A stretch of 63,853 nt of DNA, counting the filler, from Choristocarpus tenellus KU-1152 (taxonomy: Eukaryota; Protista; Phaeophyceae): assembly GCA_964200185.2 (NCBI GenBank). It is 11 parts of 11 records of this genome, joined end to end, with 100 filler letters (N's around TTAATTAATTAA, not from the genome) between each part and the next. Parts side by side here need not be neighbours in the genome. Positions count along the whole stretch, not along the records: positions 11,128 to 19,177 come from CAXNAD020005223.1; 10 more parts are not named here. One strand, written 5' to 3'. A program made the translations under genes and the position numbers. Under the pieces are notes generated by a model, which worked only from the letters and a program-made list of their open reading frames with translations, ran no database searches and had not been told where the DNA came from. Shown in pieces: positions 10,999 to 19,177 of this stretch. Every line of letters begins with the position of its first letter. The stretch's first letter is position 1.

Positions 10999-13802
10999 AG
11001 GGTCAAAGTATCTGGGGGGGGGGAGTGNNNNNNNNNNNNNNNNNNNNNNNNNNNNNNNNNNNNNNNNNNNNTTAATTAATTAANNNNNNNNNNNNNNNNN
11101 NNNNNNNNNNNNNNNNNNNNNNNNNNNGGGCTCTAGGACGATAGAGTGAGTGCGATAGGTATTTCCTTGTGGAGTGATATGAATGTGGGTGTTGGATGAT
11201 TTATCTGTTTTGGTGCCAGCTGTTTTGGTGGTTGTGCATGTTTTGGGCAATGATAGATCGGAGAGACTTTTGGGGTTTTTTATTTATCGTTACGATTCAT
11301 GGTGTTGCAGTAGTAAGTACTCTGGTGTGATCGTGCCCCTGCGCATAACCAATTTACATGCTTTGGTTCCTGGGGTTGTGACAGGGAATGGACCGTTGGA
11401 GCGTTTGTGAGGCTGCTGCCATGTTCTTGGGGTAGATGCATTTCTGGGGTTTGTTGTGGGTATGCGGGGTAGTTAGTCGTAGTCACATTTATTGTCGTTT
11501 CCCCCTCTGACCGGTACGCTGTATTTGCTGGACAAGCGCACAACCAATGTGTCGTAGAGGTGAGATATATGAGTTGGGGGGGTACAGCAGAGAAATGGAG
11601 CCCTCGCCCTGCATGTTCGTGTTTTGAATGAGAACCAGAACTCACACGAGCTTCCTGAAGTTTTTGTTTTGTTTTACATCTTTTGCTGTCACGATATGGA
11701 GATGCTGCTCCGTTAGTTGCTGTCTAGTTCGTGCCTGCCTCAGTGGTACAGTGTTACAGTATCTCAATGTTTGACCAAGTCAATGTTTGACCAAGTCGGA
11801 GGCCTGAACACTACCCTGCTCAGTCCGTAGGCCATCTCCCCGCTGCTCACACGTACTCTCTGAGTAGTCGTATATATATATATATGTATAAATATCTGTA
11901 TATTTGAGTTTCTTGTTGTGAGTCCCGTCACCTGGATGCCCCTCGCGGCCACTTTTGTCCTCCTTCTGCTATAGGGGAGGATAAGTCGTTGAGAAGAAGA
12001 ACGTTATCCAGGCTGGTGTTGAAAGTCCGCAGTATTCGATTTAGTCGAGATGTTGAGGTACCGCTTCCCTTCCCCGGGAGTAGAAGTAGGAATAGATTCT
12101 GCCAACGGTGGTGGTACTAGAGTATGATTACGATCCCTTGGTGCCATGCTGCGCTGCATGCAAACAGAGCGGTGAAAGAGTTGGCTGAGAGCAGAGCAGT
12201 GAAAGAGTGCATGAAGTTGGGCCCTTGAGACCTTTGAAATATCATCCCGTGCGTGTGCGTGCGTTGCTGGCGGGGGACACTCAGAGCAGCTGCAATAGTA
12301 TGTGATACACTCCCTTCCCCCCCCCCTTCCCCCAATTATTGTGATGTGATACTCTCTTCTAACGAACCCTGCCGGCGAGCATGAATTTTATACATCCCTA
12401 CTTTGACAGTGTGGTAAAGGTGCCAGTTGCGTTGCCGTTGCTTCAGGGGTGTTCGTCTACATACATTGCTGATTGTTTTTATTATTATTTTGCCTTCGCC
12501 GCAGCTGTGAGGACCATCCCAACGTGTAGTGAGAGGCATTGCGACTGATTGAACGACTTCATCTGATTGGTCAGTTCTTGGGCATGTTGGGTTCGGCCAT
12601 TCCACTGCCCGTCCCTCCACCTCCCCTCTAGTGCTGGACCTACCTTGGGGTTGTCCACAATGAAACCCTAGCACCTCGAGTTTAGAGGTGTAGAGACAGA
12701 TAGGATAAGTGTACAATCCATATATAGATAGACTTAAAAGGTCAAGGTTAGGATCTCACTAAAACCAGGTATCCCTGAAAAGAAATCTGACTTTTGAAGG
12801 GGAGTCGGAACCTGTGAAGTTGATGCAGGGAACAGTGTCCGTTTATCGACTGAGGTACAAGGACACCCCATCTCTCTATATATATATTTTTTTACATGTA
12901 GTTGTGTCTTAAATCTGTGATTGCAATGTTGGAGCTTCACGCAGAGAGTGTCTTCAGGTGGCATTTTATAGTCTCTCGGAGTTAAGTGCATTGCAAGAAA
13001 GGAAGGTAAGAAAGATGTGACCCTGCAACAACAGTGAGCGTATTGTAACCAAGGTTTTGTTAGCCATCTTATAAATCAACCAAACGGAGGGTAATTTTTT
13101 TTCTACTTCAAGATTGCCTGAAAAAAAAAATAATACTTCAGTAAAATTCTGACTAGTAAATCTAGTCCCTGCTCCCAGAACTGAGGGGAAAGTGTCGGAA
13201 TTGTTTTGCTGGAGAGGTCGAGAGTACTTGCCACGAGGTTTCATTCCCCAACTTCTGGTCATCTTGTACAGGCCTACGTCAACAAAACCTGCACCTTGTT
13301 TGAGGGATTTCTATACTTAAGAGGGTTTTTTTTTTAATGTTGATGCGTGTGATCTTGAAATGTATGTTCACAAGAAGAGGGTCCCCAAGAACTCTTTTTT
13401 CACTCAAAACTATATTTCCTGTCCTTGGAATTCAACCTCTGTGCACCCTTCTTAAAAAAAAAATCTGCCACCTCCAATCAACACAAAGAGGTGTGCTAAA
13501 TAGTACAATCAAGGATAGTGACAAACCGAGACACTTGCACGGAAGAGTCGATATTAGTTGAGATGTATCAAGGGACACAATTTCCATTATCTTGTCACAG
13601 CAACAGACAAAATATCTGGGGCACATATAATACACACACACACACACATATGCTGAACAAAACCATAAAAAGAAAGAAAAAATATGTAATCTTTGCCAAC
13701 CGGACTGCCTTTTTGTCTCCTGCTATGCCAACATGACTACCACATATCATCTGTCAATCAACCAGACTAGATATTATACTATAGAACACAAGGTGACCAC
13801 TT

Positions 13803-13877
13803 CACAGTACTTTTTTTCAGCGACCATCCGAGGATGTCAGTTTCCCTTTATGGTGGCCGCGTCATTAGCGCATCGCA
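13803..13877 (-). promoter_or_regulatory. SECIS element (type II) in the 3' UTR of the selenoprotein K gene
   Basis: Minus strand reads ATGAc-gcggccacc-at-AAA-ggga aactgaca tcct-c-ggatggtcgc-tGAa. It has the AUGA/GA non-Watson-Crick quartet, a helix gcggcca/tggtcgc plus cc/gg, an apical AAA and a mini-stem. Confidence 0.85.
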
Positions 13878-14391
13878 CCCCTTCACCCCCCTTCCCCCCA
13901 ACCTTTTATTGCCAAAATATATCTACACAAGACAAAATTCAGGTGCCGAAAAGGGGGGGGGGGGGGGGGTGAAAAGAGGCTGCTCAGCCACTGTGAAGTA
14001 GTTGGATGTTTCCTGTTCCAATCAAATGCTACCCATTGCCTTTGCCTCTGGAGTAGCTCTTGCCCTATGACCTACCCACAACCACAGCCAAGAAGCTGTG
14101 AATTGATTATCTTCAAGGCTGCAGGTCAGGGCAGGCAAGAACAGTTACACAAATTCGAGGAGAGAAGAAAAAGAATGCACCATGCCTTCAGTAAAGGACC
14201 CAATATCCCTCCTTCCTATCCATCTCCCCAACTCCAAAAGGCCATAGCCCCAGGGTTACTACCGCTCTCATGTACTACTCACAAAGCACCTCTCTACTCC
14301 ACTTTCCTCCTCAGCAACAGCTTAGGACTGGGGAAGGAGGATGAGAAGGTAAATTTCATGATAGCACTAACGGCCAACCAGGGCTACGGCC

Positions 14392-15972
14392 TTAACCTCA
14401 TCCACCTCCTACCATGTCCTGGCAATCTGCCAATCAGCACGGTAAAGGAAAGAGGTAGAGGGGGTCACGCAACTTGAAAATCAGTTAGGTGGAAAGGAAA
14501 GATTTGTTTTCGTTTCGTTTGGGGTATAATGTAACTCAGAGATCAATTTTCTTGGCCAGGCTTGAAGATGGGTACCTAGTGCTTGCACATGAGCCCAGCA
14601 GAAGGGGAAGGATGTTGCTATGAATTAGTGCAAAACGTTCGGCACTCCTACAGTGCAGACAAGATAACGCTATCTGGCTACACAAAAAAACGTCATTACA
14701 TGAAAGACTTTGAGTCACCTGTCTGTTCCTGAGTCATGCGTGCAGCCTTCTCGCCTTGCTCAACAACCACATACATCTCACCTTTGTACCAGAACAGTCA
14801 CATACCAAATACCGTAGGACTTGGATTATGCAAGTTTCATCACTCTTTGAAACCCTCTCTGTAACCGTTCTTTGACACATCTAATCAATACAAAAGCTGA
14901 TGACCATTCCAAAAGTCCGTCAAAACCAAACCCATAACTCAGAGCAACTGCACCTCCACTTGGCCTTAACCCTTGGATGTTGGATCCCCTTCTCCGTCCT
15001 CCTCCCCCCCCACCGCCTCCTCCTCCACCTCCACCACCCCCTGGTCGGTAGTTGTGATATCCCCTCTCACTCCTGCGTTTCCGTTTTGGGGTTTTCTGCA
15101 CAAAAGATTGATTGACGTTAGGTTGGAATTTGGAAGTTGAACGAAGTGTTGAATATTCAAACAGATTATGTAATAGTTCACATTTTCACACTTCACCACA
15201 AGGATTAGGTACACCAGATTGCCTGCCACCACGACGTTCCCTAACGTGATATATCACTGGGTGCTCTTCACACCATAAGGAATGCTCATTTTGAAACCTT
15301 CCCCTCAAAGTCCCCTCAATATTGTGGCAAAAAACGATGGTTCGTGATACTACGGACACATTAGATATTCCCTCATGCTTACCTCCAACACACTCCCTTG
15401 CCCACATCAAATAGCCTTACACACAAGCACACCACATTAAACCAGACTCACCGTTGACATAGTACCAATGCTGGAAAGAAGATAGTGAAGTTTATCCCGT
15501 GGACCAGGCATCGCACCCCCAGATGAGAGATTAGCCAGCATCGATTGGGGCGATGGTGCAGAGATCACATTAGCGATTGGAGCATTAAATGCCGACCTAT
15601 ATCAATGAGTGGGTAAGAGACTAAAGATTCGCTTCCTGTTTCTGGTGGTCGTCCGTTGTGAAGGCGAAATCGTCGCATTCTAAGTTCCAATTACTTCACA
15701 GACCAGACCACTGTCTCGACTTGGGTACTCGAAAGAACGCGAAAGGAAAACGGCGACATCGACTTACAATAGACCAATAACGGAGAGTATTTTCCAGAAG
15801 ACGTCGGCCACGATGCTCAGTCGAAAAGGAGACCGCCTTGATACGACTTCGCCTGGGAAGTCAAGTGGAAAGAGGGTTTCGTAGAGGTAGATGATCGCAC
15901 CTTTCTATGTTATGTCTATCTGTCTCTTCAACAAAATTACTTTGATCACTCACCATTTCGCATGTACACCAT
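14392..15972 (-). CDS. SELENOK: Selenoprotein K (99 aa, Sec as penultimate residue); exons 15954-15972, 15768-15852, 15452-15470, 14954-15095, 14392-14426
   Basis: All four introns are GT-AG and in phase: MVYMRNGEVVSRRSPFRLSIVADVFWKILSVIGLFIGTMSTKTPKRKRRSERGYHNYRP(G15)RRRGSNIQGLRPSGDCQDMVGGG-U(TGA 14398-14400)-G-stop(TAA). This fits the SelK architecture (MVY..NG.V, SP.RLS...D.FW, single TM helix, basic Gly-rich tail, GGUG). A SECIS lies downstream. Confidence 0.92.
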
Positions 15973-16449
15973 TTTGGATAGCAATCTCCGCTATCCACAC
16001 ACCCCTACCCAACCCACAAGTTCGTTGTTTGTGCAAGGCTACTGGCTTTTCAACACTTGATATTTTGATGTGGAGATAAGAGTTCAATTGCGAAACGCCT
16101 GATTACCATTTCGGGGTGGAAAGCTTAGTTAGATATTACTTGTTGATATTGTAGGGGAAATAGTGTTGTGAAAGTAAAGTATGTACATTATTATATCCTC
16201 TAATATCTTCAAGATATGTCGTGGAGACCGAAAGAATATTATACAAAAATATACCAACTATACATATAAAAATAGGATTGAAAAAATTACAATCGAATCG
16301 TCTTCGAAACGCACAGAGCGTGGCAGGTACAATTCTGTAACTCCCCCAAAAAAGATGTGGGTGTGGAAAATATTTCGAGGAGGTACTTGTTTCGCACATT
16401 TCCATGTGTTGTCTGAAGACTTTTACATGACGTACGAGTATTGCTTCTT

Positions 16450-16745
16450 TGCAGAAGAAAAAGGGACCGAAGAGTTGCTGAGATGACGGGATCATGGAAT
16501 GAGATATTTTATATCAAAATTATTTGTTGCATCTTCTGTGTACAGAGAGTATGCGTCACCTATTCAATGTAGTATCCAAAGTAGTATAATGTGTATGTAG
16601 CAGAAGAAAAAGAGACTGAAGAGTTGCCAAGATCACGGGATCATGGAATGAGATATTTTATATCAACATTATTTGTTACATCTTCTGTGTACACAGAGTA
16701 TGAGTTACGTATCCATTGTAGTATATCTAAAGTAATATAATATGC
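16450..16745 (+). repeat. Tandem duplication of about 150 bp
   Basis: gcagaagaaaaag..gaagagttg..cgggatcatggaatgagatatttt..atttgtt..atcttctgtgtaca occurs twice (from about 16451 and about 16600). Confidence 0.85.
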
Positions 16746-17339
16746 ATCTAGGAAGTTTGGTATTAGGGTTATATTTATGTATGTGTAAATAGTATCTCAG
16801 TACTATATATGTATGTTTATGTATTTATGAAGGTGAGTAAAAACAGAATGAGCCCAATCTCCTGTGAAGAGAACAGGCAGTGAGCCCTCAAATACCTCTT
16901 GTTTATTGGCAATAATTTTCAATCCTAATTCGCTCCTTAAGCACCCACTCTCCCGCTTAGGACTCCGAAATGGAACAAGACAAAACATGTGGGAGAGGTG
17001 GGGGAAACACAAGGAAAACTTATTTGTGGTCTCCACATCGTTGTCTTCAATAACGTCAGGCATTTTCGTTTTTCTCTGTATTCCTTAGGTCAAAACCCAC
17101 CTGGGAAGCTTCCCTGGGATAAGAACTGCTGTGGGCGTATCTAAACATTGATAGGCGGAAACTGTGTGTTTGGTTCAAGATCATTGACTGTTGCACATGA
17201 GCCAACTACCCTATGAGGGGTAATAAGCAGGAATTTGTCCGAGGAGTTAGTATATTGCTATATATGTAACATATATATATATTATTGGCTATCTGCTCCT
17301 AACTATCTTGCACAACAACTTGCTGGTTGCTTTATTCCT

Positions 17340-18030
17340 CAGCAAGTCTTGCGCATGTAGGGAATCCATTTTGGCTGGTCTTTGCAATTTATTTGTGATA
17401 TTGCTCTCAGCAAGTTCATTTCCCCTCTAAAGGAATTTCATGTTGATAGTCAAGATGGTGTCATCGACACCAATGTCAAACATTACGACACCATGTTCCA
17501 TTGGGTCAGATAGTGATGCGACTAACTGGCACACTGAAAAGTGGTATCTCAATTTTTGGGAAAATCAGAGGTTGGTAACCTTCCACACCAAAATCCTTGG
17601 CCCATCACCCCAATAAACCTCGACTATCTGCCCGATAGAGTAGTGGGATACCAACGTTCGACAACCCAGTAGGTAAAAGGCATACTTGCAGTCTTGAGGG
17701 TGGTCTCAAGAGAGGCCAACCTAACAAACATCCAAAAATTGTAGAGTCTCCTTCCCCCACGATGTAGCACGTGGCATGGCTCTAGTTTCCTCACTTACCA
17801 CATAATCTGAATCACCATATTTCACTGCACTTCCTTTCCTGTTTACATTTCCGTGTTGACAACGAAGGGTTCCAAGATGCTCAACGCCATCAATATGACT
17901 AATCCAGTATAGTACCCTATATTCGAGCTATCTCCACCTTTAACAAGTGAGCAATCCCTTGCAGGTGGAACCTATGAGCAAATTCACAAGTGTACCACAT
18001 GCTTTCGCGTATTCTCCAGGTCAGGGCAAG
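17340..18030 (-). mobile_element. Highly decayed retroelement RT (DIRS/Ngaro-like)
   Basis: Ordered remnants GTLRCQHGNVNR (resembles GKLRL..D...VN), MPFTYWVVERWY..SGR*SRFIGVMG and DIGVDDTIL (resembles YVDD), with many stops and frameshifts. Confidence 0.35.
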
Positions 18031-19023
18031 AGGGTCTTAGCACCAAGTGATGCATCTACATGTGATACATAAGACCACAAAGTTTTCGCATTGGGGGGGT
18101 TGTATGCATGGCAGGGTTCCTTGCTGTTGGAGTTTGGCGTTGGAGTAAGGGGTAAAGTAATATGTTCTGGCATCAGAATATAACATCATTTTGTTATGCT
18201 GGAGCTAGGTCTCCTCAATTCCTAGGTATCTCCAGGTTTGAGCACACAGGAGGGGGACTGATTTGGAGAGAGGACTCTACCTGTGTCTAGGTTCTATGTC
18301 TTTGCATGAGGTCGATTATCATTGGAGAGGTGAACAGGAGTTGGTTGCGCTGATAGCCCAGTGTATTTCATTGGTTGGATGATGCGATCACATAATCCCG
18401 CTATTCACTAAACGCCAAATGAGCATTGTCTCATATTCGAACACTGTGTGTATACATATTTCCCGTAACTACATTTGTGCAGAACAGTTTTTGGGGTTTC
18501 ACGGTTTAGCCGCCAACTGTGACAAAGAGAGGAAAGCGCTAGTATCTCTTCTTGACCATGTATCTTTTCTAAATTGAGAATTGCTACCTCCTCCTCCTCC
18601 TCCTCCTCCTCCTCCCACTACAGTTAGTTCAAGACATAATTATGCAGTATGTTGTGGGTGTTGAGTGCTGTGCTTTTTCAAGTGATACTTACGGCCATAT
18701 ATATCCCACAGAACGTGTATGTGGGGGTGAAAGGAAAAGGCTTCGACAGGGGGTAAAGAGGAAGGGAAGCTGATCTACCAGTTAGAAAACCAATGTGCTC
18801 CAGCAGCGCTAGGAGAAAAGGAGCAGTTGGAGGTGTACCAGGATAAACCAGGAGAGGTTGTGCCTGAGGGGAAAGAATAGGGGGAGAAGTTCTGCACCAG
18901 CTATAAATCATCATGTTCCAGCACCACCAGGCGGAAAGTAAGGCACAAGGGGAGGCTCTGAATGGGGGGAAAGAGGACGAGAAAATCCATCTACCAGTCA
19001 CGCATGGCGCTCCAGCAGCACCA

Positions 19024-19177
19024 GAGTGAAAGTATCTTAGAGGGTACGAGTTTTGGTCTGTTTGTCCATTTGGGGCTTGGCTTCCCACGGGTTTTTTAAT
19101 TGTATTTTCCTACTCCAAAACGTTTCGGAGTAGGTAAAATGTATATGTTATGAAAAGGTGTGTTCGGAACAAGGATA
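19024..19177 (+). mobile_element. MITE family A, 5' part (runs into gap)
   Basis: gagtgaaagtatcttagagggtacgagttttg... Confidence 0.75.

Follow-up and report, generated by a model that had tools for sequence, protein, structure and literature searches.

A transcribed SelK-family gene with a probable selenocysteine codon and a type II SECIS-like hairpin in Choristocarpus tenellus

SelK (SELENOK) occurs in almost every eukaryote that uses selenocysteine (Sec) and is among the most widespread selenoproteins (PMC2375036). The family is already counted among the selenoproteins of algae, where its members are almost only Sec forms (PMC7539508). In mammals, SELENOK is an ER membrane protein with roles in ERAD and a cofactor of DHHC6; the Sec of the human protein is at position 92, and it is through Sec92 that mammalian SELENOK supports DHHC6-dependent palmitoylation (PMC5789314). 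The human protein is also described as forming an intermolecular diselenide, in the work of Liu et al. (2014) as cited in PMC5789314. Here we describe a locus from Choristocarpus tenellus KU-1152 (Phaeophyceae; assembly GCA_964200185.2) that is very probably a true gene for a Sec-containing SelK. The window, that is the whole stretch of DNA that was analysed, comprises 63,853 nucleotides and joins 11 parts of 11 records with filler letters between them; all positions count along it. The locus lies in an 8-kb piece (11128-19177) from record CAXNAD020005223.1. It shows every SelK and selenoprotein feature that we tested, save the gathering score of the Rfam SECIS_1 model.

The minus strand was read over positions 13600-16200. 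Five coding exons between 15972 and 14392 join in phase through four GT..AG introns. The coding lengths of 19, 85, 19, 142 and 35 nt sum to 300 nt, or 99 codons plus a TAA, and the exon phases (1, 2, 0 and 1) keep the frame open across all joints. The introns measure 101, 297, 356 and 527 nt, with GTGAGT, GTAAGT, GTGAGT and GTGCAG as their respective donors and a pyrimidine-rich acceptor ending in CAG in each case. An earlier, sequence-only reading of the window had proposed five exons of these sizes with in-phase GT-AG splicing, and a 99-residue product ending DCQDMVGGG-TGA-GGT-TAA; every coordinate and length, as well as the product, agrees with the minus strand. The C-terminal codons GGA GGT GGA TGA GGT TAA occupy 14409-14392, with the TAA at 14394-14392. 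The UGA falls within the last three codons and after Gly-Gly, as is characteristic of the SelK_SelG family. Judged by eye, the 99 codons have a SelK-type layout, in which one hydrophobic segment towards the N-terminus precedes a basic tail rich in Gly. The segment, LSIVADVFWKILSVIGL(F)IGTM, likewise read by eye, extends over exons 2 and 3, and exon 2 carries most of it together with the conserved N-terminal region of SelK. Exon 4 includes 15 consecutive GGN Gly codons at 14995-15045 (minus strand), where contigs from elsewhere in one sequencing run (X1, see below) also match; CCT/CCN runs that resemble this tract are found at 18578-18631.

Gene finders can easily miss or truncate a gene with five exons, two of them of 19 nt, and a late UGA. 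The ORF list holds a single fragment here, of 91 residues (14826-15101), which begins in exon 4 and runs into intron 4; the sequence-only reading was thus right that the ORF track offers just a mis-extended piece of exon 4. Three lines of evidence place the gene beyond chance: the Pfam match of exon 2, the rarity of the strict SECIS pattern, and the agreement of RNA-like contig ends with the exon edges. The coordinates of the gene and of its 3' features are collected in Table 1.

Table 1. Features of the SelK-family locus, in window coordinates.
Feature	Position	Strand	Description
Exon 1, coding part (predicted)	15972-15954	-	19 nt, ATG GTG TAC ATG CGA AAT G
Exon 2	15852-15768	-	85 nt, translation EVVSRRSPFRLSIVADVFWKILSVIGL
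Exon 3, long form	15596-15452	-	145 nt, upstream acceptor at 15598-15597, in frame
Exon 3, micro-exon	15470-15452	-	19 nt, completes Phe, then IGTMST
Exon 4	15095-14954	-	142 nt, basic stretch, run of 15 Gly, then RRRGSNIQGLRPSG
Exon 5, coding part	14426-14392	-	35 nt, (D)CQDMVGGG, UGA, G, stop
In-frame UGA, proposed Sec codon	14400-14398	-	codon 98 of 99, in the last exon
3' UTR, stop to SECIS	14391-13875	-	unbroken in contig 10 of run X2
Type II SECIS-like hairpin	13874-13806	-	Rfam alignment, folds and strict pattern

We searched the Pfam collection exon by exon, with single-exon queries. Exon 2 alone (27 residues) matched the SelK_SelG family (PF10961) with an E-value of 5.7e-5; its score of 24.1 bits exceeds the curated cut-off, which is 23.3. 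The gene is a member of this family, and the SelK identity assigned in the sequence-only reading is borne out by the match. It spans positions 8-34 of the 86 positions in the profile. The putative exon 1 translates to MVYMRN plus the first base of a split Gly codon, giving seven residues that take up profile positions 1-7 ahead of the exon 2 match. This fit, together with the ATG context (CCAAAATGG), the phase and the consensus donor (G|GTGAGT) that directly follows, suggests that the coding region begins here. Exon 4, whose sequence is low in complexity, gave no Pfam match when searched alone.

Three public runs from one study (X1, X2 and X3) cover the stretch. Contigs of X1 and X3 cover everything and are DNA-like, whereas those of X2 are RNA-like, a property judged from the behaviour of the contigs. 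X2 has zero depth from 15981 to 17400, upstream of the gene. Within the gene, its contig 16 (15768-15853) corresponds exactly to exon 2 plus one ambiguous G that either the intron or exon 1 could supply, and contig 12 (14954-15096) corresponds exactly to exon 4, again with one ambiguous G. Both borders of the 19-nt micro-exon coincide with X2 contig edges, at 15452 and 15470. A joint from 14426 to 14954 skips 527 nt bounded by CT..AC, read as GT..AG on the minus strand, and marks the exon 4/5 junction. Introns 2, 3 and 4 are covered by X2 contigs of lower depth, as expected of unspliced precursor RNA. No X2 contig was found over exon 1 and intron 1 (15854-15980), nor any exon 1/exon 2 joint among the X2 contigs; the exon 2 contig departs from the genome one base beyond the acceptor, in support of that site. 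The gene is expressed, and exons 2 to 5 have the structure given in Table 1. Of the splicing across four introns envisaged in the sequence-only reading, X2 recovered the joint between exons 4 and 5 as well as the edges of exons 2 to 4, and the joints of the micro-exon by arithmetic on contig depth, but not the exon 1/exon 2 joint. The 3' UTR reaching about 13800 that this reading called for agrees with contig 10 of X2 (1361 nt), which carries the exon 4/5 joint and then runs unbroken from exon 5 through the stop and the SECIS to 13097, so that the SECIS is continuous with the coding exons.

The core of the SECIS-like hairpin consists of AUGA at 13865-13862, an unpaired AAA at 13849-13847 within AUAAA, and GA at 13818-13817. 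Helix II has 9 bp with one bulged A and is followed by the internal loop AUAAA, and the apex is formed by a 4-bp mini-stem with an 8-nt loop. The core lies 535 nt downstream of the UGA on the same strand. A strict pattern, defined as ATGA, AA 10-13 nt further on, GA, 9 of 9 pairs and at most one bulge, was matched once in the 8-kb piece, at this hairpin; 0.017 matches would be expected per 8-kb strand, or about 0.003 in the 1.5 kb that follows the stop. A looser pattern that admitted 8 of 9 pairs and A/G-TGA was dropped as evidence (2 matches, 0.8 expected), and its plus-strand match at 12814-12853 was taken as chance. The upper stem alone folds at -14.7 kcal/mol, with z=-2.2 relative to shuffles; a plain minimum-free-energy fold of the 96 nt around the SECIS does not stand out from shuffles (z=+0.74). 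The weak helix I forms 4 of 5 pairs, of which two are G-U, and a small local hairpin competes with it. The Rfam SECIS_1 model, searched on 13760-13940, aligned over its full length (1-64 of 64) with AUGA, AAA and UGA in register, at 18 bits (E=0.41) where the gathering score is 35. This match emerged only in the narrow search of 181 nt; the whole 8-kb piece against Rfam, at E-values up to 1, gave no SECIS and only weak microRNA-like matches on a C/G hairpin next to it. The SECIS_1 model leans on animal sequences, and a low Rfam score therefore weighs little against evidence based on shape. The sub-threshold score is a matter of model sensitivity and is outweighed by geometry and position. A canonical type II SECIS about 530 nt downstream, as proposed in the sequence-only reading, thus holds for geometry, strand and distance, and falls short in the Rfam threshold and in helix I.

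The same two shortfalls could be taken to mean that the UGA is an ordinary stop in a SelK-family gene, the protein ending ...MVGGG and the hairpin being a chance look-alike. We regard this as improbable, since the strict pattern would arise only about 0.003 times by chance in 1.5 kb on the right strand, the UGA-Gly-stop is located where the Sec of the SelK family sits, and the 3' UTR extends past the hairpin. The near-exclusive occurrence of Sec forms among algal SELENOK members (PMC7539508) also argues against termination at the UGA.

Directly upstream of the SECIS, a C18 tract and a G-rich tract pair with each other to form a hairpin of some 100 nt (13983-13874, minus strand). A 196-nt fold that includes it has z=-3.9, and the weak microRNA-like Rfam matches, which occur on both strands, stem from it. 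Homopolymer length at 13953 and 13969 varies between runs. An AAUAAA at 13910-13905 (minus strand) lies in the loop region of this hairpin, about 40 nt upstream of the SECIS core, and would cut off the SECIS if it served as the main poly(A) signal. The X2 contig continues across it, which indicates that some RNA reads through, contigs being unable to show 3' ends. The X2 contig breaks at an A8 run (13093-13102), and RNA-like X2 contigs go on from 13100 to about 11215 (about 1.9 kb) with little change in depth (241.7 against 254.7). No Pfam-matching open stretch was found over 11215-13100, and the RNA there belongs either to a 3' UTR longer than 3 kb or to another, abutting transcript that is non-coding or unrecognised. 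On the plus strand, an open stretch of 202 codons (13869-14474) lies antisense to the 3' UTR and exon 5; Pfam gave nothing credible for it, and it was attributed to chance.

The X2 contigs also revealed a second form of exon 3, which is absent from the sequence-only reading. A joint from 15594 to 15766 skips 171 nt bounded by CT..AC, with the cut shifted by 2, and uses the exon 2 donor. Translation of the resulting long exon 3 stays open and adds 42 residues, in which no Pfam match was found. This isoform looks minor, its joint contig having a depth of 20.8 against about 1525-1580 for the inferred contigs of the canonical junctions. The 19-nt side of the micro-exon is too short to be listed as a contig joint, and the canonical path was approached through depth. 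Summed bin by bin, the listed X2 pieces (which account for 9 of the 11 contigs) match the depth exactly except in three bins, which contain the micro-exon, the 3' end of exon 2 and the start of exon 4 on its 5' side. Two of the surpluses amount to 19 x 1525 (28982) and 29 x 1525 (44234), and fit one unlisted contig that joins the micro-exon to the first 29 nt of exon 4 at a depth of about 1525. The remaining surplus of 47504 would correspond to about 30 nt of the exon 2 end, again at similar depth. This arithmetic implies that the exon 2-3-4 path through the 19-nt micro-exon dominates.

A main product made from the 145-nt exon 3, with the micro-exon minor or not real, could appeal to the alternative joint being the only listed one between exons 2 and 3, and to a 145-nt X2 contig that sits exactly on 15452-15596. 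We find this very improbable: the shortness of the 19-nt piece explains the missing canonical joint, another X2 contig starts exactly at 15470, and the surplus depth of about 1525 fits the 19 nt of micro-exon plus 29 nt of exon 4 within rounding, while the alternative joint reaches just 20.8. The inner acceptor (cttctttccag) is also much stronger-looking than the outer one (ttgatatag), and the 42-residue insert belongs to no Pfam family.

Contig depth in X2 is 2390 for exon 2, about 1525 for the inferred junction contigs and 217-255 for exon 4 and for exon 5 with the 3' UTR. The 5' exons are thus 6-10 times deeper than exon 4 and the 3' UTR, in a quantity that is no measure of expression level. 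The drop may come from the (GGN)15 tract, from a paralogue or allele with the same 5' exons, or from an artefact of per-contig depth. That the locus is a non-functional copy or pseudogene of SelK is scarcely credible, as nothing specific favours it beyond an exon 1 that lacks RNA support and the 5'-to-3' fall in depth, and the frame is intact over five exons with consensus splice sites, the gene is expressed and spliced in X2, and the SECIS is intact.

A few other features of the 8-kb piece were noted. Ten long open stretches in the flanks gave nothing credible against Pfam. A 125-nt sequence recurs as a direct repeat within 16451-16724, its two copies being 90% alike and separated by 149 nt; an X3 contig skips 16486-16634 (149 nt) with 32 letters common at the joint, which looks like a one-unit copy-number variant of this repeat in the DNA. 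Many X1 contigs partly match the AT-rich TA-repeat stretches at 12868-12897 and 17271-17282 and continue into unlike sequence; these stretches are probably dispersed simple repeats.

For the Sec-containing SelK gene that we favour, we infer Sec insertion at the UGA, and the localisation and function of the product, along the following lines. The locus is a transcribed nuclear SelK/SELENOK gene of 99 codons whose penultimate codon, UGA, would be read as Sec. Its product would combine the conserved N-terminus and one hydrophobic membrane segment with a basic, Gly-rich and probably disordered tail. The mRNA retains a long 3' UTR with a type II SECIS 535 nt beyond the UGA. Recruitment of SBP2 and of the Sec-specific elongation factor by a SECIS is the standard mechanism of Sec insertion in eukaryotes. 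The element described here would recruit SBP2 and the elongation factor with Sec-tRNA in this manner, and the UGA would then be read as Sec. Because the UGA is in the last exon, an mRNA on which recoding fails should be spared nonsense-mediated decay. Homology with mammalian SELENOK suggests that the product spans the ER membrane once, with the Gly-Gly-Gly-Sec-Gly tail in the cytosol. A tRNA scan of the 8-kb piece found no tRNA, and hence no tRNA-Sec in that piece. One may further imagine that the Cys eight residues before the Sec, for which the sequence-only reading raised a possible selenosulfide, forms an intramolecular selenenylsulfide with it, as a self-contained redox centre, and that the 42-residue variant, by changing the region next to the membrane, could provide a second functional form; we consider this extension doubtful.

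The locus is of value chiefly for annotation, as two of its coding exons are only 19 nt long and a UGA comes two codons ahead of the stop. A SelK gene would also mark this genome as one that uses Sec. The locus brings nothing new on how selenoproteins work, SelK being among the commonest selenoproteins of eukaryotes.

Compared with known systems, the predicted protein is closest to SelK/SELENOK. The GGG-U-G-stop end resembles that of human SELENOK, which is 94 residues long; Sec92 is third-last there, whereas the Sec is penultimate here. As in human SELENOK and the genes of Ostreococcus, Dictyostelium and Drosophila (PMC2375036), the product has about 95-100 residues, an MVY start, and one hydrophobic segment close to the N-terminus ahead of a basic tail rich in Gly; Sec would come after Gly-Gly at the very C-terminus, and the last exon contains the UGA and the 3' UTR the SECIS. 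The gene differs from known SelK in its uninterrupted run of 15 Gly, in the Cys 8 residues before the Sec and in the minor in-frame splice variant of 42 residues. The exon 4 translation shows no evident counterpart of the proline-rich SH3-binding element described for mammalian SELENOK (PMC5789314). The selenenylsulfide imagined above would be intramolecular, in contrast to the intermolecular diselenide of the human protein. The G-rich protein of Drosophila (SelG) belongs to the same Pfam family and has a Gly-rich C-terminal half. The hairpin, in turn, resembles the type II elements of Rfam SECIS_1 (RF00031) in its AUGA/GA core, its helix II of 9 bp with a bulge, its mini-stem and its site in the 3' UTR. 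It differs in its score of 18 bits, where the gathering score is 35, in its weak helix I and in the C18/G-rich hairpin of about 100 nt directly ahead of it. The unpaired AAA is located 12 nt after the core, in an internal rather than an apical loop, as in type II SECIS elements.
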